NCBI GenBank assembly: GCA_976226885.1
Contig: OZ320316.1
Location: 24,552,001-24,616,000, forward strand
Reading direction: 5' to 3'
DNA: 64,000 nt
From: Iphione sp. A-MEVVRFRX5
Lineage: Eukaryota
Below the pieces are notes generated by a model. That model was given only the letters and a program-made list of their open reading frames with translations, was not told the origin of the DNA and did no database searches. Made by a program: the position numbers and the translations under genes. This document shows positions 3,264 to 58,485 of the stretch, in pieces (the first letter of the stretch is position 1; every line of letters starts with the position of its first letter).

Positions 3264-3278
3264 GACATGGCGGAGTGA
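3264..3278 (+). promoter_or_regulatory. GACATGGCGGAGT motif (YY1-like) with uORF ATG GCG GAG TGA
   Basis: Identical 13-mer at 52397 upstream of ORF1 of element B; the ATGGCGG core matches the reverse YY1 consensus CCGCCAT. Confidence 0.5.
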
Positions 3279-3574
3279 GGAGGTGACTGCGCGCAGCCTG
3301 TGCGTTTATTGTCGGGTATCGACAGTAGACAAAAGATTTGAAACTAACAATTTGCTTAAATGTGTTAGTTATATTGTCTGATACTGACGAAGGAGTTAGG
3401 AGGCATATCATATTGATTCTGGACGTTTATTTGTGAATTTCTTTTGGACGGGTCGTGCTGGGCGACAATAGGTGAGAAGCGGCTACCGGTGGATCTACCG
3501 CTGAACCAGGTTATACGTGACAACTGTTACCAAGTTGATACCAAGTTCGGGCTGTGCTGTGGTTCAGCTCCACA

Positions 3575-5653
3575 ATGGCTACTAGTGGACACCGACCAGA
3601 CGGAGAACCGGTAAAACAGGACGGAACTCCAAATACAACTGGACCACAAGGAGAAAAACGGAAAGATGTGAGTCCCCTCGACCGAGACCCTAAACAGCAG
3701 GTAACTGAGAATTTGCTTACGGGGATTAATATCTCGTTGAAGGGAGGTGCAGAAGACAGTGGTATCAAACAGGCCTTGGATCGTATATTCCAGGAGCTTC
3801 AAATAAGGGATGAATCCATGAAAGCTAGGGATAAAGAACTACACAGTAAAATGGATTCCATTATACAAATCTGTGACAATAATATAAGTGAATTATCAGA
3901 TTTGATACGTCAAAATACAGATGATATCGAAGAGCTTAGAAAAGATGTCACTACCGCCAACAACCGTATACAGGACCTGGAAAATAAGAATTCCGCCATT
4001 CAGGGACAGATAGCGGGAATTACAGGCGGGGGAAGCAGTTTAACATCGTTGCAAAAGAGATGTGAGATCTTGGATAGGCAATTAAGACGGAAAAATGTCT
4101 ATATCGAAGGATTGGCTGAGAGGCACGGTGAAAATGTAATTCGCTCAGTGATTGACTTATGTAAGTCAATTAAAGTGGATTTGAAGAAAAGTGACATTGA
4201 CTTTGCTTATCGTACTGCTAGGCGTAACCAGGCTGGTATGAGGGGCATATTTGTCAAATTTATGTCTTCAGGTACGAAGGAGGTAGTCATGAATGCTAAA
4301 AGGAGACTACGTGGACAGAACGTTTGGGTGAATAATGACTGGACACCTGTGCAGAGAGAGCAGGCAAAACAGCGAAGACTAGACCGGTTGGCTAGGCCGA
4401 CCACTTGGGCCAATGCTGTCCGGGGGCAGGGAGCTGAGCAAAACCAACCCGGTAATAACAATGCGGACGGGATGATACCCTTGACAAGTGGTACAAACAG
4501 TGTAGCCTTACAACAATCAGATAGGCAGATGGCAAGATCTGATGCTACTGATGGTGATTCTATGGATGTTTCGTCCGATGATGATGATGGGGGGTCAAGT
4601 TCTGACACAGATTCGACTAAGAGTCAAGAATCAGTTGGCCAGAGGCCCTCACTTATGGCACCTATTCCAAAGTTACTGGTTCCAAAGCTACCGATGTCGG
4701 TGGGGGGTCGGAGGAGGGTGGGTCCTGCGCCGGGCAGGGGCAAACCAACTGCTAGAATGGCGGGCGGTAAGTCGCCGGTAGCAGGTACGCCCACCCCTCT
4801 CCCCACCCCTCCCATTACTGGACCTGGTAGCAGGGGTGTGGACCCCATGGTTCACGTGTCCAGACCAGGGCCTGATCCCCAAGTGAAGACCACGAAACCA
4901 GAGAAAACAGACGTGGATTCGAGTCAACCAGTCGTAGGTCCGGCAGCGGCTGTCCCTGGGCAGGGAGTGGCACACAAGCCAACACTGGCTACCTCTAAAG
5001 CATCGATAGTGGTCAACAAACATGGTATCGCTGTGGGTACTAGGAAGTTACCTGATAAAGAAACACCAGTGTCTGTCACTTCCGTAACCACTGGAGTCAC
5101 GGAGTTGTCAAATACAGAAGTTGCTGTGGCCGACACTTCTGCAACCTCGTGCTCACCTACATCGTCCACTGGGTCGCCGGCGGGTAAGCAAAAACTTTTC
5201 TTCCTGGACCCGAAAGGCTCTAGGTTGGCATATGACTATGAGGAGCGTCTGATGTGGCATGGGGCCTATTATATGTCGGCAGCGCATGCCTATTACTACG
5301 AAGCCGCCATGCAGTCGAAGCAGGAGCGATTGGGAGCCAATATAAAGAAAGCGACTAGTACTGCAAAAATAGACAAGTTGAGTGAAAAGCTACCAGTTAT
5401 GCATCACTGGGAGTCCACAAAGCTGTCTGTTTTACGTGTTATTCTGACAGAAAAATTTCAACAGGATAAGCGAGCTAAAAACGATCTATTAGCAACTGAT
5501 GATGACAGGATTGTGATCCTGTCTCAAGATACTTTTTGGGGCTCTGGGGTTTTGCCAGGGGCGTCAAAAAGGGAAAAATACGGGTTCAGTGGCCTGAACC
5601 ATTATGGGTGTTTGTTAAGCGCAATTCGAAATGAATTCCGAGGAAAAACCTGA
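3575..5653 (+). CDS. Element A ORF1p: coiled coil + L1/transposase_22-type RRM + long low-complexity linker + C-terminal NADAR-like domain
   Basis: First ATG at 3575 in good Kozak context (ACAATGG); the track start at 3554 is non-ATG. Heptad region, then LDRQLRRKNVYIEGLAE...RGIFVKF...VWVNNDW. C-terminus WESTKLSVL..EKFQQ..LLATD..DTFWGSG..GLNHYGCLLSAIR matches the YbiA/NADAR pattern. Confidence 0.85.
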   Translation: MATSGHRPDGEPVKQDGTPNTTGPQGEKRKDVSPLDRDPKQQVTENLLTGINISLKGGAEDSGIKQALDRIFQELQIRDESMKARDKELHSKMDSIIQICDNNISELSDLIRQNTDDIEELRKDVTTANNRIQDLENKNSAIQGQIAGITGGGSSLTSLQKRCEILDRQLRRKNVYIEGLAERHGENVIRSVIDLCKSIKVDLKKSDIDFAYRTARRNQAGMRGIFVKFMSSGTKEVVMNAKRRLRGQNVWVNNDWTPVQREQAKQRRLDRLARPTTWANAVRGQGAEQNQPGNNNADGMIPLTSGTNSVALQQSDRQMARSDATDGDSMDVSSDDDDGGSSSDTDSTKSQESVGQRPSLMAPIPKLLVPKLPMSVGGRRRVGPAPGRGKPTARMAGGKSPVAGTPTPLPTPPITGPGSRGVDPMVHVSRPGPDPQVKTTKPEKTDVDSSQPVVGPAAAVPGQGVAHKPTLATSKASIVVNKHGIAVGTRKLPDKETPVSVTSVTTGVTELSNTEVAVADTSATSCSPTSSTGSPAGKQKLFFLDPKGSRLAYDYEERLMWHGAYYMSAAHAYYYEAAMQSKQERLGANIKKATSTAKIDKLSEKLPVMHHWESTKLSVLRVILTEKFQQDKRAKNDLLATDDDRIVILSQDTFWGSGVLPGASKREKYGFSGLNHYGCLLSAIRNEFRGKT

Positions 5654-5772
5654 GAATGTAGTTGTATATGTATTTGAGCGTTTGTTGACTTGTATCAAAA
5701 TGTTGTTTTTTCTTCAACCATAGACTTTTTTCAACTCTCCGTCCTGGAATTCACATTGGTATTATCACGACA

Positions 5773-6492
5773 ATGAACCGGAGGCCTCCATCTTTAAACA
5801 TCCCGCGTGGCTGTCGAGGGTTTCCTGATATTGTGGTGGTGACAGATAGCCATGGCAAGCACCTTGTTGATGATTTTGCAGAGATGATGTTCTATCGCGC
5901 AGCTGTGATGGTAATTCCGGGAGCCGGTCTGGGTTCAGCACTCCAGGTAGGAGTAGAACTATGCAAATATTATAATTTCAGGTACTTGTTTGTCCTCGCT
6001 GGAATAGCGGACATTACAAAACTTTACAAGTTTGCATCAGCTCGAGCTGGGAAACCGTCAGGTATGGTTTGTACCCGGCATCTGACTACTGAGGAAGGTA
6101 AAAATGCCTTACTTGAACTGTTTAAGACAGATGTACCCAGGGCTAGAAGTGAGCTGAATCTGATCGGCACAAAGTTGGTGATATCTTCCATCTTTGGAAT
6201 GTCTTACAGTGATTACAACAAATATAGGTTTGGCTTTCAGGTGCGGCGGAGTAGCAGTATCGTGTTCCAACGAATAATCAATGACTGTGTATTATATCTA
6301 AATTGGTTAATTCGTTGTGTCAATAGCTCCCATGGCCAGTATACAGTACCTATTTATGCAATTGTACATAAGAGAGATAAGGGCCGCTATAGGCATAAAT
6401 ACTGTAGGCTAGAGGATGGTGTGCACTTAAAAAGGAACTATAGCCAAGTGTTATCATGCCAGATATGTCGATACCTGGCTCAACTATACTAG
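5773..6492 (+). CDS. Element A ORF2: stand-alone SGNH/GDSL-type esterase (239 aa)
   Basis: SGNH blocks in the right order: I VVTDSHG, II IPGA, III LAGIAD, V EDGVH. Confidence 0.8.
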   Translation: MNRRPPSLNIPRGCRGFPDIVVVTDSHGKHLVDDFAEMMFYRAAVMVIPGAGLGSALQVGVELCKYYNFRYLFVLAGIADITKLYKFASARAGKPSGMVCTRHLTTEEGKNALLELFKTDVPRARSELNLIGTKLVISSIFGMSYSDYNKYRFGFQVRRSSSIVFQRIINDCVLYLNWLIRCVNSSHGQYTVPIYAIVHKRDKGRYRHKYCRLEDGVHLKRNYSQVLSCQICRYLAQLY

Positions 6493-6672
6493 TATGGCAA
6501 ATTTTTGATGTTACTAGAGGGAGCACAGGCTACCATGTCAGATTGAAATTTTTCTTTTATTTAATTATAATATGTTTTCTATACAGCTATTTAGCAACAT
6601 TGTTTATGTGTTCACCGCATATTTTGACGTTATGTTCATATAAGGCATGTGGGATATAACTAAACTGGATCG

Positions 6673-9469
6673 ATGTTGTTGATTACTTATATCAATGTGC
6701 GTAGCTTATTGAGAAATTGGGATGATTTTGTTTTGTTTATAGAAATGCATAATATTGATGTTTGTTTTGTGGCAGAAACTTGGTTAGATACTTCAGTTAC
6801 AAATGCAGCTTTAACTCTAAAAGGGTATAATTTTACTAGGGTAGATCGTGAAGTAGGAGTAAGATTGAAAGGGGGAGGGATGATGGTATATTACAAAACA
6901 GAAATATCTCATATAATAGACTATAATGATGAGAATTTGATAGCTGATCATGATTTTGAAATATTGCCAATAGTGATTAAGACTAACAATGTACAGATAC
7001 ATTGTATTGGATGTTACAGGCCGCCAAGAGGTAACTTGGATATTGCAATCAATAAGTTACATAAAGCTACGTCAAAGAATAAAATGGTATACTCACATTT
7101 CGTGGTATTGGGTGATTTCAATGTTAATTATAATAGGGTTGAGAGGGATTATGACAAATTGGAGAAGTTTACCCTGAAGAGCGGGGCGGTACAATTAATT
7201 CGGGATGAGACTAGGGTAACTTCTAGATCGAGAACATTGATAGATTTGATTTTTACAAACATTAGTCATAAACTAGAAGACGTCCGCTGTGTTGATGCCT
7301 CCTTTTCTGACCATAGAGCCATAATGTGTATGATTGTTAATAAACAAGGCGATCTAAGACATGATTACGTCCATATCCGAAAGCGGGATATTGCCCACAT
7401 TGAAGATTTTTACAGTAGAGCGAAGGAGGGGATCAATGCCTTGAATAATAAGCCTAGGGATCTCCAGAGTAAATGGACAGCGATTAAATCATGTCTGCTG
7501 ATTTTATATGACATTTACAATCCAAAGAAAAGACTACGATTTAGAGGAGGAAGAAAATGTTGGATGTCGGAAGAACTCTTAGAAATAATTAGGGAGAGGA
7601 ATAGACTGTACAGAATAGCTAGATGCAGAGGGGGTCTGGAATAGTGATTGGCTTATAAGGTCAAAAGGAAGTCCGTGAATAAGCAGATTAGATTAGCCAA
7701 GAAAAAGTATATTAGCAAACTATTAAAGGAAAAGGAAGGGGACCCTGCTAAGTATTGGTATACTTTAAAAACCAACCTTGGACTAGGAAATGAGAGTAAA
7801 GTAGATATTACATTATCTATTGATGGGGAATTGATAAGGGGGGACAAGGTTCCGGATAAATTAAATGGATTTTTTCTAAATGTGGGTTCCAGTGTTCTGC
7901 AAACTCTAGGCGTGCACCCAGTAGAGAACATAGGTATGGATAGGGTGAGAGTCGTTATGCAAGAAAATTTTGCGGCTAACAAGGAGCAGGTGATTAGACT
8001 AATCAAATTACTGCAGGAAACGAAACCTTCAGGGATGGGGGACTTGCGAGTTAACCATGTAAAAAATATCATGCTTAATTCTATAGATGTGTTTGTTGAC
8101 ATGTTTAATCAAAGCTTTAGGCAAAGTGAAATACCCTGGGAGTGGAAGTTAGCTAGGGTGTGTCCCTTATGGAAAGGAGGTAATAGAAAAGACACGGGTA
8201 ACTATAGACCCATAAGTGTCCTGAGCATTGTCTCTAAAGTTGTAGAAAAAATAGTTCATAAGCATATCTTCCACTATTTAAATGAGCACAGGTTATTAAC
8301 CCCAAGCCAGTTTGGCTTTAGGCCGGGGTGCTCCACAGAGTCGGCAATTATAGCTTTAACAGACAAAATTCATGAAGGTTTGAATAATAATATGAGGGTG
8401 TTGGGACTATTTATCGATTTTAAAAAAGCTTTCGACTCTGTGGATCACTCCGTGCTGTTGTACAAGCTGGAGATGACTGGCATTGTTAGACGAAATTTAG
8501 AATGGATTAAGGAATACTTGCGACATAGAAGGCAATACGTGTCATGTAATGGGAGTAGGTCAGAAATGGGTGATATAACATGTGGTGTCCCCCAGGGGTC
8601 GATACTTGGTCCCCTCCTTTTTCTTATTTTTATGAATGATCTCCCAAAGGTCATGGTGGGATATGATTGTTATATGTACGCGGATGATGTGGCTCTAATA
8701 ATTATGGGAAGGGATGATAATGATTTGAGAGAACATGTCCAAAATGTGGGTAAAAAGTTTATGCTATGGGCTAAATCGTCTAGGATTATGGTAAATATGA
8801 AAAAAAACTAAGGGGGTATATTTTTCATATCGTAGGAGGACGGCAAGACCCCTGGGGGATCAAGTAAAGTTTGGAGATGGACTAATTGATATGGTTGACA
8901 ACTTTGAATACCTTGGCGTAGTATTGGATAGTACTTTGACAATGACAGCTGCTTGTAAGAAGATATCTCATAAAGTCATGGGTAGATTAACGTACTATAG
9001 GAAAATTAGGTATTTACTTGACATGGAAACTGCTATCAGGGTGGCACGTACTATGATCCTCCCAATTGTTGACTATGCTAGTGTTATCCATACAAATGTA
9101 AAATCTAAACCATTCATGAAGTTAATGAGTATACGTAAGACAGTGATTAACTTAGCATTTGGGTTTAAGAGATATACCAAAGCAGAAATAACGGCAGACT
9201 TTTTGATGAGAAGGGATCAGAAACTGCTTCGTGTTTGTTACAATGAAGTGGAACCGATACACAGAGTAAGAGTCACTAGAGATGGCCTGAGGAGGAAGCT
9301 TCGAGTATCAAAACCAAACAAGGAGATGTTCAAAAGGTCTATAAGATATGCAATGAAGCAATTGTGGGAAAAATTACCTCTGAATATTACCATGTTAGCA
9401 TTGAAGGATTATATAAACAGGGTTAGAACCCTGGGGCAAGTGTATGCCCTTTCTTATAAGGTACAGTAG
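6673..9469 (+). pseudogene. Element A ORF3: APE endonuclease + reverse transcriptase, disrupted (TAG TGA at 7642-7647; +1 frameshift in A8 run 8800-8807)
   Basis: APE motifs NVRSL, ETWL, YRPP, LGDFN, IDLIF, SDH. RT motifs YRPISVL, QFGFRPG, FIDFKKAFDSVDH, GVPQGSILGP, YADD, FEYLG. Removing one A restores NMKKTKG and gives about 931 codons. Confidence 0.93.
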
Positions 9470-9608
9470 AGTAAGAGTATAGTGTGTATCCCCTGTAGGA
9501 TGGATTTGTGATATCTCTGCTGTTATCTTATTCTGTTCTATCAGCAAATCTTCTACAGTGAAAAATGAAAGTAAAGAAGTATCTGTTTGTTCACAAAATA
9601 TTATGACT

Positions 9609-9720
9609 TGATCTGGGGTAAAGCCGCGATCAAAAAAATTTCCATGATCTGGGGTAAAGCCACGATCAAAACTACCATTGAATCTTCCAAAATGGCCGTA
9701 TGGGGCTAAGCCGCTACGCC
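9609..9720 (+). other. Three related RNA stem-loops in the 3' UTR of element A
   Basis: TGATC-TGG-GGT-AAA-GCC-GC-GATCA (from 9609), TGATC-TGG-GGT-AAA-GCC-AC-GATCA (from 9645), CGTA-TGG-GGC-TAA-GCC-GC-TACG (from 9697). Confidence 0.7.
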
Positions 9721-12051
9721 GAAAAGTAAGACTTGTAACGTATACGTATTGTGAGGCATGCCATGTCATCAACATTAAAATCTTAAATATATTTTTGCAT
9801 ACCATCCCATCTCATCCAAAAAATCTATTGTTTGAAATATTGGTTTCTGGATGTACATACAGTTATGTATAAATTTCCAGCGAAAATAAAGATTTAAAAA
9901 AAAAAAAAGTTCCAGGGCTGATGATATTAGGTCTGTGGTCTAAACATATACACAACAGTTGTTGTTATTTACGTGTGAGATATAACAGCGTTGATACGTG
10001 TCTTTATAACGTATAAAGTTGGGATGCGGTCATCAGCTTTCTGCCCTACCCTGCAGTAATCCCTTGTTAATTGGCAACCCTCCAAGAATCTACATTTAAG
10101 ATGCACTCTGTGTTTTTCCATGGGGTAACAGTTTCTCTGCAATTTGATCTATCCACACGCAGGCCATCCAAGGCCTATCGTACAGAAGCTGCCCTATGCC
10201 AGGAGCCACTTAAGAGGATTTTATTCAAATAATTTATTGACAGAATATCATCTTAGTGGAATCGAAGGCCCCTTCTTTCAGGCCAGGCAGCAAGTCGGGC
10301 GGCACTGACAATCAGGGAACTGAAGCATAATTTTCTATCAATGTATTAATGCATAGCCATTCGATATTCCCTGGGGAGCCATATGTACTTTCATGGCAAA
10401 GCCACAATCTATATGACAACCAGGTCTGAATTCCTAACACAATAAGTGAACTTGAATTCATTCTTCCCTGAGGGCATACTTGTCTTTCAATGCGATTAGT
10501 TCCTTGGCTTTTTGTCCAGGATAAAGTTTGTACAGAGACGGCAGGACGTCTAGTAAATACAAAAAAAACACCAACATACACAGGAAAATGAAGACAGATT
10601 GAAGACGTGCAGTGGGTGTGAAAAGACAGAGTCACACCCGAGTGTGTTGGGGGCTTGGCTCACGTTCCCGCGGTCTGCGCTGTGGATGGCCGAGGGGGGA
10701 CACTCCCTCGAATAGTTGAAATTTAAACCGATAGGCGGCGTGGCCTGGAGAAACCGTTGGGAAATTGTGAATTTCCAGCCTCGAGCGACAAACAATCTCC
10801 CCGTCCACTGTTTTCTCTCTTTCAACTTTTATTCATGTTCTCTGGTTGTGTTGCTTTTTTCCTAGACAGTTACACCCTGAAGTAGAACAAGAGTTACTAT
10901 CATGTAGAGGTATACACGTGACTGTGTCCCATATGTACAGACCTTCCTGTCCTTCTTGTCTGTTTTTTACTCTGCCATCCTAAATATATTTTTCATGAGG
11001 TGGATAAATTCAGTTTTATTTTGGCCTAAAGCTGGTGTTATGTGCGACTCTATTTCTGTACTGCCTATCTATTTATCTATCTACCTATCTGTCTGTTTAT
11101 CTATCTGTCTGTCTATCAGTTAGATGGCAAACTTATTCAAAAAGAAATAATATTCTCCAATCAAATGGAAGTCATATGACCTTTCTCAACCAATCAGTGT
11201 AGAGCAGGTGGCCACATCAGTAACATTTGTCGCCATTTGATTTGCATGAAGAAACATTCTCAGTTATTGGTGATTGTACATTTAATTGACTTTATTTTCC
11301 ATTAGAAACCATCAAATCTTTTACCGATGAAGGCTGCCACTGGCGTATTTAATATCTCTGTGTGGAAAGGTAGAAATAGACATCAGCCTGTCAGATGAAT
11401 ATCGCCTGGAAGCAGCCATAACTTGTTCTCAGGATCAAGCAGGTGTTTATCCTTGTTAATCTGCTATTTGTGAGGTTTCCTCACAAGGACACCAATTTAG
11501 TGGTTTACAAAGTACCAAGTGTAAGTTATAACATGGTTTTAGTGCTGAACATCCAAAATCTTTCAAGATAAAATTTCCTTTCGCTTTATGAAAAGCTTCC
11601 GTTTCGTAAATACAAATATTTCAAAGTTAAACATTTCTCTGCCGGTGACCACTTTTGCATATAGGATGCATGATAATTATTAAAATGTCATTATACTTGG
11701 AATAACTGGTACTGATAGGCGCTACATTCATATAACTACTAATTATTCCATTAAGGAATAGACACGATAATGTTATATATTTGTGTTCCACTGCAGCATC
11801 CTGCATGTACTTTTTACTTGATGTGTCCCAGTTGGATGGCAAGATGGGAGAGTACTGCAAGAATCGCCATGTCAGTCATGCTGTCAGGAAAATAAGATTG
11901 CTGGTCACTGCTAAATAATTCCACTGCAGTAGGTCAAATATTGTCTAACATCCTTCATTGAGTGGTCTGGTACAACGACGCTGGAGACGGACGAGTCGGA
12001 GGATGGCTATAAGATATACAACAGGGGACCATTCACGTTGACCGAATGATC

Positions 12052-52396: not shown

Positions 52397-52411
52397 GACA
52401 TGGCGGAGTAG
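52397..52411 (+). promoter_or_regulatory. GACATGGCGGAGT motif (YY1-like) with uORF ATG GCG GAG TAG
   Basis: Identical 13-mer at 3264 in element A. Confidence 0.5.
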
Positions 52412-52502
52412 AGACGTGTTTTGAGTGGGCTCCGACTTGACCAGTCCAGAATAAGCAAAGATACCAGGGGAAGTATACAGAAGGCCCCAAGTAAGTCAGG
52501 GA

Positions 52503-54176
52503 ATGCTCACGAGATCCAGAAGCACAACAGAGACAGAGGTCTACTGCAATATGCCGACATCAAATCCAGGGAAGAAAGGTGGAAAGCCATGACCGGCTAC
52601 CCCGAGCGATGATAGAGGAACGAACGGTCATAACGGTCAGCAGGTGGGCGATCTGGCTGTCACGGTCTCGAAGGGCAGTGACAGCAGGGTGGACCCGCCA
52701 ACACACGAGGTGACCGCCGGAGCAGGTCTGTCCATGTTCGATGTGGACAATGACGAAGGGGAAGGAGGCATCTACCCCCTACCACAAAAGGCTGAACCTG
52801 TAAACGGAGCAGATGAAGGTGATCTGTTTCTGGACACACCAGGACATGGTGAGGACTATAGCCTAATAGACTTAGGTGTAACAGGGAACGATCCTATCAA
52901 TTTGACACCTGTTGGAGGTGGAGGGAGTCCCACTAGCTCTGCCGCATTGTTCTTAGTATTAAACGATCTAAGGCAGGAGATAGATGACATTCGACCGAGG
53001 TTAACAAAAATCAGTAAGCTAGAGTCAATGGTTACTGAATTAAAATCAGAAGTAGCAACTATCACAGAGAAGTATGAGAAATCTTGTGAAAAAATCAATC
53101 AGCTAGAATCAACAATGGCAGCGAAGGTGAAAGCAGACAAAGAAAAAATATTGGGGGACGTGGACATAGCGTTCAGGCAGTATAACATCAGACTTGAATT
53201 GATGGAGGGAGAAAAATGTAAACTGAAGGATCGCATACTGCAGCTTGAGGTAGACCTTAGAAAAGCAAACTTTATTATCGAAGGAGTCCCAGAGGGTTGG
53301 GCAGAGGATACATGGGCGATTGTAAATGATCTACTCTCTAGGATCGATCAGGATTGTTACTATTCTGATGCGCTACTATCAGCCGTCAGAATCGGTGGTA
53401 TGAGAGGCCGTCCCAGACCGATTTTAGTAAAAATGGTGGGAGACGACATCAGGAATAGTGTGTTTTCAAAAAAACCAAATCTAAATTGGATACAAGGGGG
53501 TGGTTATATCTCGTTTCGGGAGGATCTACCTGAGGAGGCAAGGACTCCTAACAAGTCGCTAAAAGCAATCAGTAACTTGGCTGTAAGCAAGGGCATGAAA
53601 TCTACAGTGAATGGCACAGTTATCAGGATAGAGGGCACAGAGTACAACTTCAATGAGTTACATAAGCTGCCTGAGGGCTTGTCAATCGAAGAAACAGCTA
53701 GAAGACGGGTAGGGAATTCCTTTATTTTTAGCGGACCGAACTGCATACTGTCCAATGAGGCACCAGTTAATATAGAGCTAGGCGGAGACAGGTACAAAAC
53801 GGTCAACCATTGGGTAGCAGCGGAATGCGCGCGACTACATGGTCGTGACGAAATCCGTCGACAGATTCTAACAGAATCAGATGGGAACAGGGTACTACCC
53901 CTAACATATCAAATCAAGAAATCGAGCGATTGGTTACACATGCAGGAGGAGATATTGAAGGAGGGTCTCTATGCAAAGCTGAAAGTAAGTGACAAGTTCA
54001 AAAGAGAGTTAATATCAACAGGGGCACAGCAATTAGTCGAAGCAGGCCGTGACTATATTTATGGCTCAGGCTGCCACTTATGGGACGCAAAAATCAAGAA
54101 TGGACTGTGGGCAGGTCGTAATCTTGCTGGCATTACTTTGCAAAAAATTCGTGCCAGTCTCTCCGATTCTAACTAA
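52503..54176 (+). CDS. Element B ORF1p: acidic/disordered N-terminus + coiled coil + L1-type RRM/CTD + C-terminal NADAR-like domain; one in-frame TGA at 52590-52592
   Basis: The frame of the 52644 track ORF extends upstream to ATG 52503 (MLTRSRS...) across a single TGA; next ATG is 52734. Motifs LRKANFIIEGVPE, RPRPILVKM, FREDL. C-terminus FSG..ILSN..YKTVNHW..ELISTG..LVEAGRDYIYGSG..WAGRNLAG..LQKIR. Confidence 0.82.
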
Positions 54177-54619
54177 CGATCTATTCTTGTTGCAGGAATT
54201 GAATTGGTATAAAATATTGATTCGTTGATCATTATTCGTTTCTCCGGCGTTCACAGGGAAAAAGGTAGTGTGCTGGACATATCACTTGGTTGCTGTCACG
54301 GGACAATATCAATATGCTCATAATTATCTAAGTAATATAAATTTCTTCGTCACATATTGTATCAGACTATAGATCAATTTATTAGCCCTTGCATAATGAT
54401 AACTGAACCGCTTGTACTCATAACATCCCTGCGTCGCTACAATCAGCCCAGGGACATGAATAACGTGAGATCGATTTCAATTACACTAATGGAACATTGC
54501 TTTGCTTGCCTAATAATGCTTTCCAACTGGAATTTAACGTGTACATTCCTGCATATTGCCAGACTCTTATTATCCAACTTGTCTGAATACATGATTTCAG
54601 GAGATATTGAGGACTCGAA

Positions 54620-55252
54620 ATGCGACAAGTTCTACTGCTGAGTGACTCGAGAGGTCGATGCATAGCGTCCTCCATGGGTGACACGTGGGAGGCTGATAAT
54701 GAAGTCTCCCTTGTTGTGAAATCGTTCCCGGGTGCCAGGCTGGGTTTTCTCTTGAGCATCTTGCGTGAAACTGATCTAAGTGACTACAGAATGGTTTACA
54801 TATTCGCCGGCATAGCAGATTTAACTAAAAAAATTAAGGGGGCAAATATCTTGCTCCCTAGGTATGACAGCATGGTGGAATTTAGATTATGGTTAGATGC
54901 TCTATCATCGTTGCTCAGCCGTAGAGTATGTGAATATCATCCTTACATACCGATAGGATTGGTACCAATAAGTGGCATAAATCTGGCTCAATACAGTCCC
55001 ACAACCTACTCAAAAGATTTTCAGAAAATGCTAAACAATATGATCATGGAATTGAACATCTTTTACAGACAATTCAATTCGCACTACAACCTGTACACAC
55101 CAGCTACTGAATTCCCTGTGCACCGGAGGATCAAGGGTAAATATCGAACTCGTTTTACATACCTATACGACGGCTGCCATGCGGGCAACAAGGCAACTGC
55201 CAGTTGGGTCCGCAACATCAAAGCAGCTATACTCGTCATGCTGCGTGACTAA
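54620..55252 (+). CDS. Element B ORF2: stand-alone SGNH/GDSL-type esterase (210 aa)
   Basis: Blocks I LLSDSRG, II FPGA, III FAGIAD, V YDGCH. Confidence 0.82.
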   Translation: MRQVLLLSDSRGRCIASSMGDTWEADNEVSLVVKSFPGARLGFLLSILRETDLSDYRMVYIFAGIADLTKKIKGANILLPRYDSMVEFRLWLDALSSLLSRRVCEYHPYIPIGLVPISGINLAQYSPTTYSKDFQKMLNNMIMELNIFYRQFNSHYNLYTPATEFPVHRRIKGKYRTRFTYLYDGCHAGNKATASWVRNIKAAILVMLRD

Positions 55253-55405
55253 TAGAAAACGGTATGTTGTGCTTTTTTCTGGTCAGGTCAAGTCGGGACA
55301 CAATCTTGCTCATATTCTCTCTGCACATACTTATCCTGAGTGGATTACGAGTGACAAACTCATTGTACATAACCTTAACCCTCCTGGGGGGGCTGTCACC
55401 TTTCC

Positions 55406-58195
55406 ATGACAATACTTACTATATCAGCTTGGAATGTGCATAGCATACTAGGGAAATTAAGCCATGTGCAAAGTCTGTTATACAGTCACAACGTGGATAT
55501 ACTTGTGATAGTCGAGACATGGCTGAACGGTGGAATACCAAACTCAGTATTAGAAATAACAGGGTACAGACTAATCCGACAAGACCGCTGCCCAGTGGCA
55601 ACAGGATTACGTGTTGGCGGGGGCGTTCTGGTATATGCAAGAAACAATTTCGAAGTAGATGTACTAGAGGAACTGTCGTCTGTAGATCATATTGGCCACA
55701 TCTTATCATTAAAAATCAAACCTGGGAATAGAAAAAAGCAATACTTTACGGTAATATATAGAAGACCCAACAGTAGTTTAGACGCTTACCTTGAGAAATT
55801 GGGGGTGGTTCTGACCGAAATAGTTAAATACGACGATAGGGTCGTTACAGTCTTGGGGGATATGAATGTTAACTGGATAAAAAATTCCGTCGAGAAGAAC
55901 AAATGTCTGTCTTTCTCGAAGAGATTGAAGATTCCACAGCTAATTACCACCTCTACCTATCGTGCCGGGTCTTGCCTAGATCACATATATACGAATCATA
56001 AGTATATCATGGAAGGAGGAGTCTGGGGGGACGCTGCTAGCGACCACAATCCTGTATTTGTAAAAATTAAAAAGGGCAGGGGAAAGACACCATTGTCGAC
56101 ATCAAGAGTGAGAAATTATAGGAGGTATAACTATGGGCGATTCTCTCAGGAGTTATCCGAACAAAACTGGGAGCTGGCTGCTGATGCAAATGGAGAATCG
56201 GGATGGGAGAAGATAATTGAGAATGGTTTAAGAGTCTTAGATGACATAGCACCATATGAAGAGAGGAAAGTGTTTACCTCCAAGCCATTTTGGCTAAGCC
56301 CAAAAATAATGGACTTGAAACGGGAACGGGATTACTACTTTAAAAAGCACAAGCGGTTTCATGACGAGGACAGCCTACGGATATACCAGTACTATAGGAC
56401 AAGGGTGAATAAGGAATTATTTCATGCTAAGAAGAGAAGGGTGAATGAAGAAATATCTAGGGCTGCAGGGGACTCAAGGCAGCTATGGGGGACCATAACA
56501 AAACAGGTATTTGGGAGGGTTAATTGCAGACACGATATTATACTGAAGCAGGACGGGGCTTCTCGTGGAGTTGAGGATTCCGCAGAACTACTAAACAATT
56601 TTTTCATAGACTCTGTGGAGGAAGTAGCTGCACAAATGGACAACGTGACTATACCGAATCTCGAAGACGCTGACGACGGATTAAATGACTTTAGTGAAGT
56701 TGACAATCGTACAGTACTGAGACATGTGAAAAAGTTACAAGAAAATAAACCCACTGGGATGGACGGAATAAACATGAGGGTCCTCAAACACCTACTACAA
56801 ATTAAGGTTGATCTATTCACGTGGGTTATAAATGATTGTTTAAATAAAGGAATATTTCTGACAGCATGGAAAAATGCAACTGTAGTGCCCATACACAAGA
56901 AAGACAGTCGTTTAGAGTGTAAAAATTATCGACCAGTATCACTCCTACCTGTCCCGGGGAAGATTCTTGAGAGAATAGTATTAGATCAGGTAAACTCTTC
57001 AGCAGAAAGTAGGCACATTATGATGGACTCACAATATGGCTTCCGAGCGGGAAGGGGCTGCAGCCTAGCTTGTGCAGATCTATTGCAACATGTGTATGAG
57101 GACATTAATAATTCCAGATACCCTGGGGCTGTATATTTGGACCTAAGCAAGGCCTTTGATCTTGTCTCTCACGAACTAATTGTTAGGAAATTAGCAAATT
57201 ACGGGTATACGGGGAGAGTAAACCATTGGTTCAAAAGCTATCTAGCGGGCAGGAAGCAGAAGGTAGTTTGTAACGGAGTAGCATCGACGATAAGACAGGT
57301 AAACACGGGGGTTTCCCAAGGCTCAATATTGGGCCCATGGCTATTCACAATGCTAGTAAACGACCTAAACACTGTCAGCTTTCCCTCACGGTTAGTGGTC
57401 TACGCAGACGACATAATTTACGCATGGGGAGGGAGCGCCTGGGCATTGAATCTTAAACTTCAACACACACTAAGACAAATATCTGTCTGGTGTAATATAA
57501 ATGGGATGAAACTAAACCTTACGAAATCTAAGTACATGTGCTTTGGTAAAACGAGCCAATATGATTTGGATCTGGAAATAGCGGGAACTAGGTTGGGGAG
57601 GGTTAGGACCTTCAACTACCTAGGGTATTGGATTGACGAACAACTAACCTTTAGGCATCTGATAGAGGACAAGGTGAGGAAACTAAGAACAAAAAGTTAC
57701 ATTCTAGGAAGGGCAAAAAGGCTTTTTAATGCTGATACAATGCGTTTGGCGTATAATGGGTTCGTTACATCCACCTTAAATCATGGCCTGGAGTTTGTAT
57801 CTGGTGCCTCAAAGGTATCGTTGGAAAAACTACATGGGGCCTATTTAACATCAATAAAACAATGCTTCATGAGTGAATTTACTTCTAAGAGGAGACTAAT
57901 GGGCTGGATGGTAGATCATGGGATGATAGATCTAGAGGACCGTATAGAATACTTCTTAATGCTCCTCATGCATGACATGTCAAACTTGAAATTTTTCAGA
58001 CGACTGCCGATGAGAGGTACCAGGGCATCACAAAGAGAAGACCTACTAACGAATAAGCCAACCAGTGAGCTATATCGTAGAGGGTTTCTGTATAAAGGTA
58101 TGATTAAGTGGAACAAAATACCCTTGGCCCATAGAAGTTTAAATAAAGGCAAGTTCAAGGGAGTTCTAAAGAATAAGTCAGGTCGCAAAAACTAA
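55406..58195 (+). CDS. Element B ORF3: intact APE endonuclease + reverse transcriptase (929 aa)
   Basis: APE motifs WNVHS, ETWL, GGGV, YRRP, LGDMN, LDHIY, SDH. RT motifs NYRPVSLL, QYGFR, YLDLSKAFD, GVSQGSILGP, YADD, FNYLG. No stops or frameshifts. Confidence 0.96.
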   Translation: MTILTISAWNVHSILGKLSHVQSLLYSHNVDILVIVETWLNGGIPNSVLEITGYRLIRQDRCPVATGLRVGGGVLVYARNNFEVDVLEELSSVDHIGHILSLKIKPGNRKKQYFTVIYRRPNSSLDAYLEKLGVVLTEIVKYDDRVVTVLGDMNVNWIKNSVEKNKCLSFSKRLKIPQLITTSTYRAGSCLDHIYTNHKYIMEGGVWGDAASDHNPVFVKIKKGRGKTPLSTSRVRNYRRYNYGRFSQELSEQNWELAADANGESGWEKIIENGLRVLDDIAPYEERKVFTSKPFWLSPKIMDLKRERDYYFKKHKRFHDEDSLRIYQYYRTRVNKELFHAKKRRVNEEISRAAGDSRQLWGTITKQVFGRVNCRHDIILKQDGASRGVEDSAELLNNFFIDSVEEVAAQMDNVTIPNLEDADDGLNDFSEVDNRTVLRHVKKLQENKPTGMDGINMRVLKHLLQIKVDLFTWVINDCLNKGIFLTAWKNATVVPIHKKDSRLECKNYRPVSLLPVPGKILERIVLDQVNSSAESRHIMMDSQYGFRAGRGCSLACADLLQHVYEDINNSRYPGAVYLDLSKAFDLVSHELIVRKLANYGYTGRVNHWFKSYLAGRKQKVVCNGVASTIRQVNTGVSQGSILGPWLFTMLVNDLNTVSFPSRLVVYADDIIYAWGGSAWALNLKLQHTLRQISVWCNINGMKLNLTKSKYMCFGKTSQYDLDLEIAGTRLGRVRTFNYLGYWIDEQLTFRHLIEDKVRKLRTKSYILGRAKRLFNADTMRLAYNGFVTSTLNHGLEFVSGASKVSLEKLHGAYLTSIKQCFMSEFTSKRRLMGWMVDHGMIDLEDRIEYFLMLLMHDMSNLKFFRRLPMRGTRASQREDLLTNKPTSELYRRGFLYKGMIKWNKIPLAHRSLNKGKFKGVLKNKSGRKN

Positions 58196-58423
58196 AAATA
58201 AACTGTATGTTAGTAGACTAGGCCGAACTGTACATATTTCCTCAGCCACTGATCCCTAGTGATGATCTCAATAAAGCTAGCGACCCACGATGGAAGCGAT
58301 TGGCCTTGGATCCCTACCCTGAGGACAGCAACTGATACCAGTCACTGTACAAGAAGCAAGCGACAAACGTGTTGGAGACAGGATGGAAAACAATCTTTCC
58401 CTCACTGAGCTCTTATTGGAAAC

Positions 58424-58485
58424 CACTTAGCTTAAGTGACAATTTGCTCAATAAACAATTCTCAATTCTCAATTCTCAATTCTCA
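58424..58485 (+). terminator. 3' terminus of element B: hairpin CACTTA-GCT-TAAGTG (58424-58438), AATAAA (58450-58455), (CAATTCT)4 tail (58456-58485)
   Basis: Directly visible; a stem-loop plus a short tandem-repeat tail is the typical CR1/L2 3' end. Confidence 0.85.

Follow-up and report, generated by a model that had tools for sequence, protein, structure and literature searches.

A three-ORF LINE design with an L1-like ORF1 fused to NADAR, a stand-alone SGNH esterase and an APE-reverse transcriptase

A usual LINE has one or two genes. The window analysed here, a 64,000-nucleotide stretch of Iphione sp. contig OZ320316.1, contains two elements, A and B, that each have three on the same strand: an L1-type ORF1 with a C-terminal NADAR domain, a free-standing SGNH-type esterase (ORF2) and an APE endonuclease-reverse transcriptase (ORF3). 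This design is real, because the layout recurs in unrelated public assemblies, and it is apparently undescribed. As the best explanation overall we consider it probable that A and B, the n = 2 copies examined in the source genome, are deeply diverged members of one APE-type non-LTR retrotransposon lineage whose RNA carries three cistrons. Their extents and ends are as follows.

3264..9908, + strand: element A, full-length but inactivated copy with the shared 5′ 13-mer, three ORFs and a poly(A) end
52397..58485, + strand: element B, full-length copy with ORF1, ORF2 and ORF3 all intact
3264..3276, + strand: 5′-terminal motif GACATGGCGGAGT of element A, exact match to the element B motif
52397..52409, + strand: 5′-terminal motif GACATGGCGGAGT of element B, exact match to the element A motif
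9470..9908, + strand: element A 3′UTR, two 27-nt repeats and poly(A) end
58456..58485, + strand: element B 3′ tail, (CAATTCT) x 4.3 (TRF, 100% matches)

The window has exactly two occurrences of the 13-mer GACATGGCGGAGT (0.01 expected), one at the 5′ end of each element, and its presence in A and B is more than chance. Beyond this motif the two 5′UTRs are not alignable. Position 3264 is the 5′ end of element A, and the start of ORF1 lies further 3′. The ORF coordinates agree with the earlier note, which had placed three same-strand ORFs in A with spacers of 119 nt (ORF1 to ORF2) and 180 nt (ORF2 to the APE ORF); the corresponding spacers in B are 443 and 153 nt. Element A terminates in AATAAA and an A-run at 9896-9908, and has no microsatellite end. 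Within the CR1 group, such a poly(A) end in place of a microsatellite has been reported only for Zenon (PMC13343379). A search around element A for a target-site duplication gave no exact repeat of at least 6 nt.

ORF1 joins an L1-like chaperone to a NADAR domain.

3575..5653, + strand: A ORF1, coiled coil, RRM/CTD, long low-complexity linker and NADAR (open from 3554, first ATG at 3575, stop ends at 5653)
5246..5641, + strand: NADAR domain at the end of the 699-aa A ORF1, aa 565-696 (Pfam PF08719, E 7.7e-17, 62.5 bits)
52734..54176, + strand: B ORF1, 480 aa from the first ATG (open from 52644; AF2 model and Foldseek)
53745..54161, + strand: NADAR domain of B ORF1 (Pfam PF08719, E 1.2e-19, 71.6 bits)

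Both NADAR matches exceed the PF08719 gathering cut-off of 35.1 bits. The AF2 model of B ORF1 runs from a disordered N-terminus through a helix of ~108 residues, an RRM and a CTD to NADAR, and Foldseek finds similarity both to NADAR structures (8bau, E 3e-8; YbiA 2b3w was also matched) and to the trimer of human L1 ORF1p (2ykp/2yko, E 3e-7), bearing out the proposal of an L1-type ORF1 that ends in NADAR. The resemblance to L1-type (Type II) ORF1p comprises a long predicted helix with an RRM and a CTD after it (~180 aligned columns, TM 0.63-0.65 depending on the target). Unlike human L1 ORF1p, the protein has no match to Pfam Transposase_22, carries NADAR at its C-terminus and is partnered by an RT that is not L1-like.

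The fold and Pfam family are those of DarT1-NADAR (DarTG1) and the YbiA-family NADAR enzymes (PMC11543638, PMC11125620), whereas in these LINEs the domain forms the tail of a retrotransposon chaperone, with no ADP-ribosyltransferase partner in view. It also differs at the catalytic Glu/Lys pair, for which the chemistry has been described (PMC11543638): the aligned positions are Ala/Ala in A, and alignment of B to YbiA gives Asn for Glu and Cys for Lys. With this pair replaced, NADAR in A and B most likely only binds, or else uses other chemistry. The SxE...K motif, which holds the catalytic Glu and Lys, is kept in the relatives L004, L005, L007 and P0001.

The second ORF encodes a small hydrolase that stands alone.

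5773..6492, + strand: A ORF2, stand-alone SGNH-type esterase, 239 aa (27% identity to B ORF2; esterase family member)
54620..55252, + strand: B ORF2, stand-alone SGNH-type esterase, 210 aa (AF2 fold, PDB matches, profile match)

Although neither ORF2 gave a match in a Pfam search, a free-standing SGNH esterase is supported by the AF2 model of B ORF2 (pLDDT 95.3), whose best 50 PDB matches are all SGNH/GDSL hydrolases (probability 1.00), and by an ORF2 profile that matches 3p94 at 4e-5. The esterase family comprises 311 clusters at 50% identity, with nearly every member a stand-alone protein of 180-280 aa, and has a nearly invariant triad (S10 80/80, D184 80/80, H187 79/80). A ORF2 keeps Ser, Asp and His and has Ala in block III; the oxyanion Asn of that block is replaced in both A and B. 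With the Glu/Lys pair missing from NADAR and this Asn from the esterase, both accessory domains may be non-catalytic in A and B.

SGNH-fold esterases with Ser, Asp and His kept are also encoded upstream of APE-RT in LINEs with esterase-type (Type IV) ORF1p, such as zebrafish ZfL2-1, CR1 and RTEX, and esterase-type proteins occur in some Penelope-like elements as well (Kapitonov and Jurka 2003; Schneider et al. 2013, PMC3905857). There, however, the esterase is the C-terminal domain of an ORF1p, behind a coiled coil, with no RNA-binding ORF1 domain. In A and B it is a separate protein of 210-240 aa without a coiled coil, and an L1-type RRM ORF1 is present in addition. Block III of the stand-alone family is Cys, Asn or Ala, in contrast to the fixed Asn of Type IV. 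In sequence the family is no closer to the ZfL2-1 esterase than to GDSL enzymes of bacteria (ORF2 profile E 0.011 against 4c1b, 4e-5 against the bacterial enzymes).

A single ancestral ORF1p comprising coiled coil, RRM, NADAR and esterase could have been split by mutation in these copies, leaving ORF1 and ORF2 as its pieces. One locus, P0127, does encode NADAR and esterase in a single 414-aa product, and in L005 the two ORFs overlap by 4 nt. P0127 is probably a decayed copy, because its upstream coiled-coil ORF is broken and the locus has no APE-RT. Moreover, among the 150 best esterase relatives 127 stand alone, with a length of 180-280 aa and a Met just before block I, and A, B, L004, L007, L008 and the ERZ26222911 contig all keep the two ORFs apart at mutual identities of ~25%, which makes a split ORF1p very improbable.

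The third ORF supplies the endonuclease and polymerase.

6673..7644, + strand: A ORF3 piece 1, APE endonuclease (Pfam Exo_endo_phos 9.3e-12, Exo_endo_phos_2 1.2e-10)
7648..8811, + strand: A ORF3 piece 2, reverse transcriptase, in the frame of piece 1 (Pfam RVT_1 8.4e-35)
8891..9469, + strand: A ORF3 piece 3, C-terminal part, continuing in a shifted frame with motif order as in B
55406..58195, + strand: B ORF3, APE-RT, intact, 929 aa (Pfam RVT_1 1.3e-32, Exo_endo_phos 4.6e-07)

APE and RVT_1 matches in both elements establish the expected APE-RT content, and in A the idea of a single ORF fails: a TAG closes 6673-7644, a TGA follows directly at 7645-7647, and a frameshift lies at about 8800-8815. 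With its third ORF broken, element A is a dead copy. Element B looks competent.

The CR1/L2 group named in the earlier note is a candidate placement, and the sole clade result is a negative one: judged by its sequence, the window RT is not L1/Tx1-like; B ORF3 matches L1 ORF2p at 1e-12 only. In a tree, all RTs linked with NADAR or esterase fall into one clade, outside L1/Tx1 (support 98/96), whose inner branches the tree does not resolve and which contains RNase H-bearing RTs with weak support. Elsewhere, in L001, an ORF1-NADAR adjoins an L1-like ORF2 (E 5e-27 for APE and 2e-48 for RT against human L1 ORF2p). L001 and the Crassostrea gigas 'Tx1' families (PMC12477816) resemble A and B in having an ORF1p with a C-terminal YbiA-family NADAR (B and L001 ORF1 share 24% identity over 77% of length), but their ORF2 is of L1/Tx1 type, and L001 has no esterase ORF between the two. 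Because it also sits on this L1-like backbone, ORF1-NADAR is a mobile module.

The layout recurs in B, as the earlier note had claimed, with the same order of three ORFs at 21-28% identity to A. ORF3 is ~28% identical (E 1e-71), ORF2 27% (E 4e-12) and ORF1 21% in alignment, with no ORF1 match by tblastn. The same layout is found on at least six independent public contigs from other datasets. A contig of ERZ26222911 encodes a 447-aa NADAR protein and a 218-aa esterase, followed by APE and RT; a NADAR ORF lies directly upstream of the esterase in L004, L005, L006 and L007, with APE-RT downstream of the esterase in L007, and L008 has all three ORFs. Two members of the same RT clade show a NADAR ORF followed directly by APE-RT (P0175) and a GDSL ORF followed by APE-RT (P0168). 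Together with the stand-alone state of most esterase relatives, the independent contigs support the inference that a LINE lineage conserves this architecture. The rival reading, in which the ORFs lie together by chance or host genes for NADAR and esterase were captured beside a LINE on a single occasion, has nothing in its favour beyond there being only two copies in the window; it is refuted by this recurrence in order and strand, is at odds with the shared 5′-terminal motif, and retains a negligible probability.

Spacer lengths range from -4 to 772 nt and therefore imply no single translation mechanism. Rather than one tricistronic message, the element could express its esterase or APE-RT ORF separately, through an internal promoter or a subgenomic RNA. 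The spacers are indeed long and differ in length (119-443 nt ahead of the esterase, 153-772 nt ahead of APE-RT), and that of L007 holds six copies of a 17-nt motif that could be regulatory. The 4-nt stop/start overlap of the NADAR and esterase ORFs in L005 and the 24-nt spacer in L004 instead fit coupled translation on one RNA, and LINEs must copy one full-length RNA. We regard separate messages as unlikely; the prediction is that one tricistronic transcript is made and that each of its three ORFs is translated.

Whether the organisation is new, as the earlier note supposed, has a divided answer. No description combining an RRM-ORF1/NADAR, a separate esterase ORF and APE-RT was found in the searchable literature, a scope outside which Repbase and Dfam entries lie, whereas NADAR in a LINE ORF1 had already been mentioned, in passing, for several Repbase Tx1 families of C. 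gigas (PMC12477816, 2025). The design might thus be real and already catalogued, for example among Repbase RTE-X, CR1-Zenon or 'Tx1' families of oysters or other molluscs, with only a prose description missing. Esterase ORF1s are known in RTEX elements (PMC3905857), C. gigas is represented in Repbase by 27 RTE-X, 14 L1-Tx1 and 12 CR1-Zenon families (PMC10294476), and ACATGGCGG lies 12 nt from the 5′ end of one S. grandis RTE-X consensus, a weak lead. Since the window RT is not L1/Tx1-like, the published Tx1 remark concerns another backbone, and the searched part of a curated bivalve LINE library contains no exact 16-mer of A or B. Prior cataloguing is a genuine possibility, short of an even chance.

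Modular capture of such enzymes has precedents in other retroelements: bdelloid Vesta/Juno LTR elements and Athena PLEs carry a GDSL or DEDDy ORF3 (PMC5408684), and an Ectocarpus Gypsy has NADAR in Pol (PMC12477816). As in A and B, a GDSL esterase or NADAR was acquired, and the extra enzyme occupies its own ORF. Those elements are, by contrast, LTR or PLE, place the enzyme in another position and have one accessory enzyme each; A and B combine two accessory folds in one LINE.

In the proposed working of the three-ORF LINE, ORF1p, a chaperone of L1 type (coiled coil, RRM, CTD) that ends in NADAR, would coat the element RNA, and translation of the downstream ORFs would depend on reinitiation or on internal entry, as it does for L1 ORF2. 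ORF3p, with its APE endonuclease and reverse transcriptase, would carry out target-primed reverse transcription. By analogy with the esterase of ZfL2-1 ORF1p (PMC3905857), the small SGNH hydrolase ORF2p may serve membrane- or lipid-linked assembly or transport of the RNP. In relatives that retain the catalytic Glu and Lys, NADAR may strip ADP-ribose, or a related N-glycosidic adduct, from the nucleic acid of the RNP.

The two diverged LINE copies in the window, element A (3264-9908) and element B (52397-58485), carry the same three ORFs on the forward strand: ORF1, a coiled coil/RRM/CTD protein with a C-terminal NADAR domain; ORF2, a stand-alone SGNH esterase; and ORF3, an APE-RT.

Open reading frames of elements A and B, in window coordinates
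A ORF1: open from 3554, first ATG 3575, end 5653, + strand, coiled coil/RRM/CTD and NADAR
A ORF2: 5773-6492, + strand, SGNH esterase
A ORF3, APE part: start 6673, + strand, ending at TAG 7642-7644 with TGA immediately after
A ORF3, RT piece: 7648-8811, + strand, in the frame of the APE part
A ORF3, C-terminal piece: 8891-9469, + strand, in another frame (shift near 8800-8815)
B ORF1: open from 52644, first ATG 52734, end 54176, + strand, coiled coil/RRM/CTD and NADAR
B ORF2: 54620-55252, + strand, SGNH esterase
B ORF3: 55406-58195, + strand, intact APE-RT

The ORF map places the three ORFs of A where the earlier note had put them, and the ORF ends (5653 and 6492) and the starts that follow (5773 and 6673) return its spacers of 119 and 180 nt. 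The 5′ terminus of the element, rather than the beginning of ORF1, lies at position 3264. The third ORF of A does contain the APE and RT that had been read there, but it is not the single ORF described, being interrupted by two adjacent stops and one frameshift. All three ORFs of B are intact and are separated by 443 and 153 nt; across loci, the spacers range from a 4-nt overlap up to 772 nt. To judge from the reading frames, the broken ORF3 makes A a dead copy, and the intact ORFs make B a potentially competent one. A look-up of sequencing runs for expression or copy number returned none, either for the whole of B or for its ORF3.

Both elements have a defined 3′ end and no LTRs, as LINEs do: A ends in AATAAA and A13 (9896-9908), and B in (CAATTCT)4.3 (58456-58485). 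For either element, the two 40-nt flanks share no exact repeat of at least 6 nt that could be a target-site duplication, which is weak evidence because such duplications are commonly short or missing in several LINE clades. A and B start with an identical 13-mer, GACATGGCGGAGT, that occurs nowhere else in the window (0.01 expected), and their 5′UTRs show no alignment beyond it. This 5′ motif had no match in the fetched loci, where most contigs lack the 5′ end, and in published LINE supplements it returned internal chance matches and one RTE-X consensus in which ACATGGCGG lies close to the beginning. The 3′UTR of A holds two 27-nt copies of TGATCTGGGGTAAAGCC[G/A]CGATCAAAA, 36 nt apart (9609-9671) and each with a 5-bp TGATC/GATCA stem, as well as a third, GGGGCTAAGCCGC-like stretch near 9702. 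A 13-codon upstream ORF (ATG...TGA, 52552-52593) precedes ORF1 in the 5′UTR of B. The sole further ORF of at least 200 aa in the window (32122-32889, 255 aa) has no Pfam match, and 140 N at 797-936 represent an assembly gap or mask.

Pfam places NADAR (PF08719) at the C-terminus of both ORF1s, with E 7.7e-17 and a bit score of 62.5 in A and E 1.2e-19 and 71.6 in B, against a gathering cut-off of 35.1. B ORF1, modelled with AlphaFold2 from a 7-sequence alignment (pLDDT 78), has a disordered N-terminus and a helix of ~108 residues (69-176), followed by a beta-alpha-beta-beta-alpha-beta RRM-like unit (179-263), a small alpha/beta CTD (267-305) and NADAR. When this model was compared with the PDB using Foldseek, two groups were returned at E ≤1e-5: NADAR/YbiA structures (8bau, E 3e-8; 2b3w, E 3e-6) and the human LINE-1 ORF1p trimer (2ykp/2yko, E 3e-7 over ~180 columns). 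Together, the fold matches and the Pfam NADAR bear out the earlier description of an L1-type RRM ORF1 ending in NADAR. Neither ORF1 matched Pfam Transposase_22 at E ≤0.1.

Identification of ORF2 relies on fold and profile, as neither copy has any Pfam match, Lipase_GDSL and GDSL_2 included. A profile of the A and B ORF2 sequences recovered 311 relatives at E ≤1e-3, including 45 at ≤1e-10, among 1.84 billion representatives, and several of these have sub-threshold Lipase_GDSL_2 matches (E 1e-7 to 8e-3). The model of B ORF2, built on an 80-sequence alignment, reaches pLDDT 95.3, and its 50 best PDB matches are all SGNH/GDSL hydrolases (probability 1.00, TM 0.51-0.68), which upholds the SGNH assignment made from sequence; a language-model atlas agrees with this assignment. 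The two-sequence profile found no match among PDB sequences. With the 80-sequence profile, GDSL proteins were matched at 4e-5 (3p94) and 9e-4, and the esterase of the zebrafish ZfL2-1 ORF1p (4c1b) was matched weakly (E 0.011) in blocks I-III only, less well than the bacterial GDSL proteins; 4c1b also lies outside the 50 best fold matches of B ORF2.

The esterase alignment conserves the block I Ser (80/80), the block II Gly (78/80) and the block V Asp (80/80) and His (79/80), and the corresponding motifs in B/A read DS(R/H)G, PGA and DG(C/V)H. At the block III position of the oxyanion-hole Asn, Cys is found in 45 of the 80 sequences and Asn in 30, while Ala occurs solely in A and B, so that their esterase appears altered at the oxyanion residue only. 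The catalytic NADAR residues, E88 and K95 of the E. coli C7 NADAR (PMC11543638), fall in the motif SxEQxFQxxK. These Glu/Lys columns are occupied by Ala/Ala in A and Asn/Cys in B, and the pair is kept in the NADAR of L004, L005 and L007 (loci from other public assemblies) and of the database protein P0001; a later Asp (D..WG motif) is kept. The A and B NADAR is altered, probably beyond known NADAR chemistry, and is more likely a binding module. Both accessory domains are therefore changed in A and B. Besides the Glu/Lys loss, the two NADARs share a His at +1 and a Glu at +6 of the motif that the relatives do not have. Such common derived changes suggest a closer kinship of A and B than can be resolved in the RT tree, or else parallel change of both enzymes in this genome.

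The recurrence of the layout in a very divergent element B was well founded: A and B share 21% identity in ORF1, 27% in ORF2 and ~28% in ORF3, and the same layout is present on contigs outside the window. A NADAR ORF lies directly upstream in every esterase relative with sufficient contig flank.

Layout on contigs from other public assemblies
ERZ26222911 contig, 46 kb: NADAR (447 aa), esterase (218 aa), APE and RT
L004, L005, L006 and L007: NADAR ORF directly upstream of the esterase (Pfam E 1e-18 to 1e-21)
L007: also an APE-RT downstream of the esterase
L008, found via its RT: all three ORFs, the middle one matching the esterase profile at 99.8% probability

A rival reading takes the first two ORFs as one frame, or as the halves of a split ORF1-esterase protein, and the split was rejected. 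The esterase is a separate ORF that starts just before block I, and among its 150 best relatives 127 measure 180-280 aa; the rest are 13 shorter fragments and 10 longer proteins, the latter comprising tandem esterases and one NADAR-esterase product. This product, P0127 (L002:9561-11245), joins NADAR and esterase in 414 aa; its start is overlapped by a 159-aa coiled-coil-like ORF and no APE-RT follows it, and it is probably not a true fusion but a decayed copy. The stand-alone lengths of the relatives and the decayed look of the P0127 locus thus leave the one-frame idea unsupported. Among the longer relatives, P0006, P0010 and P0031 (472, 706 and 2135 aa) contain two to six tandem esterase-like stretches, and could be tandem esterase-ORF arrays or merged gene models.

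Chance juxtaposition of NADAR, esterase and LINE was also considered and rejected, in view of the recurrence of the layout. Five clusters in the atlas, each with 50 members or more, consist of NADAR proteins of 415-489 aa that resemble ORF1, and dozens of other clusters are esterase-like; they are of animal origin, and the few members whose taxon is known include annelids, molluscs and cnidarians. The three-ORF finding is real, well supported and widespread. The spacer between esterase and APE-RT in L007 (1424-1906) contains six copies of TTGTTGCATGGCGACAC, 77-109 nt apart, which might be a regulatory or internal-entry array; TTGTTGCATGGCGACAC loosely recalls the CATGGCG core of the 5′ motif in the window.

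Pfam finds Exo_endo_phos (APE) and RVT_1 in B ORF3 and in the A ORF3 pieces, in agreement with the reading of the third ORF as an APE-RT. We placed the RT region in a tree of 40 rows (MAFFT alignment, IQ-TREE, LG+G4), in which the database proteins carry no clade labels. All RTs with known NADAR/esterase linkage, namely those of A, B, L007, L008, P0175 and P0168, fall in one clade (support 98/96), which also includes, with weak support, three RNase H-bearing RTs. A second RT clade is separate, and its one sampled member, P0163, has no called ORF1. The inner order of the linked clade lacks firm support, and A and B as sisters are not rejected (p-AU 0.65). Within the clade, the APE-RT of the P0168 contig is directly preceded by a GDSL ORF, and the P0175 contig (ENA ERZ26695794) has a 498-aa NADAR ORF and, after 280 nt, the APE-RT, with no esterase between them. 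An unannotated 207-aa ORF lies 420 nt past the P0175 RT ORF, and as it is of esterase size, the esterase of this element may have moved.

A word-indexed homologue search gave no match for B ORF2, relatives of at most 28% identity for B ORF3, and a single protein for B ORF1, P0001 on L001. L001 (248-5828) is an L1-like element with a 747-aa ORF1 composed of coiled coil, RRM, CTD, NADAR and a long disordered tail, and the 1-kb gap between its ORF1 and ORF2 contains no ORF of at least 100 aa; the element has no esterase ORF. Its ORF2 matches human L1 ORF2p in both APE (5e-27) and RT (2e-48), whereas B ORF3 matches it in the RT only (E 1e-12) and not in the APE. L001 and P0222 branch apart from all other RTs with support 100/100, and the window RT is not close to L1/Tx1. 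Because L001 ORF2 is L1-like and the L1 match of B ORF3 reaches only 1e-12, the ORF1-NADAR module is present on two unrelated RT backbones, which fits the modular, reticulate evolution of ORF1 described by Metcalfe and Casane (PMC4120745).

As for the putative CR1/L2-group label proposed earlier, elements of the CR1 group (CR1, L2, Crack, Daphne, Kiri, Rex1 and Zenon) have a 3′ microsatellite tail, with poly(A) in Zenon only (PMC13343379); the (CAATTCT)n tail of B fits this group, and the poly(A) of A would fit only Zenon there. Another candidate clade for the lineage is RTE-X, whose elements carry an esterase and are frequent in bivalves (PMC3905857, PMC10294476). A published gastropod ORF1/ORF2 FASTA contained no NADAR or esterase motifs. 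Four A/B-specific RT peptides were absent from a published bivalve RT alignment, in which only two generic RT motifs were matched, and no exact 16-mer of A or B was present in the examined portion of a curated bivalve LINE library.

In the Type IV ORF1p of ZfL2-1-like elements, the esterase is a domain of ORF1p behind the coiled coil (PMC3905857), while that of A and B is separate; Type IV elements have no RNA-binding ORF1 domain, whereas A and B also have an RRM-type ORF1. Surveys of the Jockey superfamily and the vertebrate CR1 group report ORF1 and ORF2 at most. Stand-alone GDSL ORFs occur in bdelloid LTR elements and Athena PLEs (PMC5408684), and one paper mentions NADAR in retroelements, namely in a Gypsy lineage of Ectocarpus and, in a single sentence, in ORF1 of oyster Tx1 families from Repbase (PMC12477816). 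We found no description of a LINE with an RRM-type ORF1-NADAR and a separate esterase ORF in the searchable literature, a scope outside which Repbase and Dfam fall. Each part is of a known kind; as far as checked, neither their combination nor the three-cistron layout has been described.

What the analysis establishes directly is the set of parts and the order in which they stand. On established knowledge of LINEs, ORF3p would perform target-primed reverse transcription, and ORF1p would multimerise via its coiled coil and coat RNA like L1 ORF1p. The esterase may have a lipid- or membrane-linked role, as proposed for that of ZfL2-1 (PMC3905857), and a NADAR with the Glu/Lys pair, as in the relatives, would remove an ADP-ribosyl group, or a comparable N-glycosidic adduct, from nucleic acid by hydrolysis (PMC11543638, PMC11125620). 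A joint reading, which we regard as rather unlikely, is that ORF1p-NADAR is a counter-defence or self-repair de-ADP-ribosylase on an RNA chaperone, with the esterase directed at a second host barrier and the A/B NADAR a later, binding-only derivative. Host ADP-ribosyltransferases would then mark element RNA or cDNA, ORF1p-NADAR would strip the ADP-ribose, and the barrier met by the esterase would be membranes or acyl modification. If this reading is true, it would identify the ADP-ribosylation of nucleic acids as a defence of invertebrates against retrotransposons.

Descriptions of LINEs usually give them one or two ORFs, and their ORF1 types (RRM/CCHC, L1-like, PHD, esterase) are treated as mutual alternatives. 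In the layout of A and B, the esterase has a cistron of its own beside that of an L1-like ORF1, with NADAR as a third accessory fold fused to the chaperone. The esterase does not replace an RNA-binding ORF1p; it is able to function alongside such a protein, a point relevant to the question of LINE esterase function. ORF1-NADAR occurs with two unrelated RT backbones, a clear example of LINE clades exchanging a module. NADAR enzymes are now known to undo the ADP-ribosylation of bases in DNA and RNA, and no role in animals has been assigned to them (PMC11125620); a NADAR carried by a widespread animal retrotransposon lineage offers a concrete, testable setting for that role.
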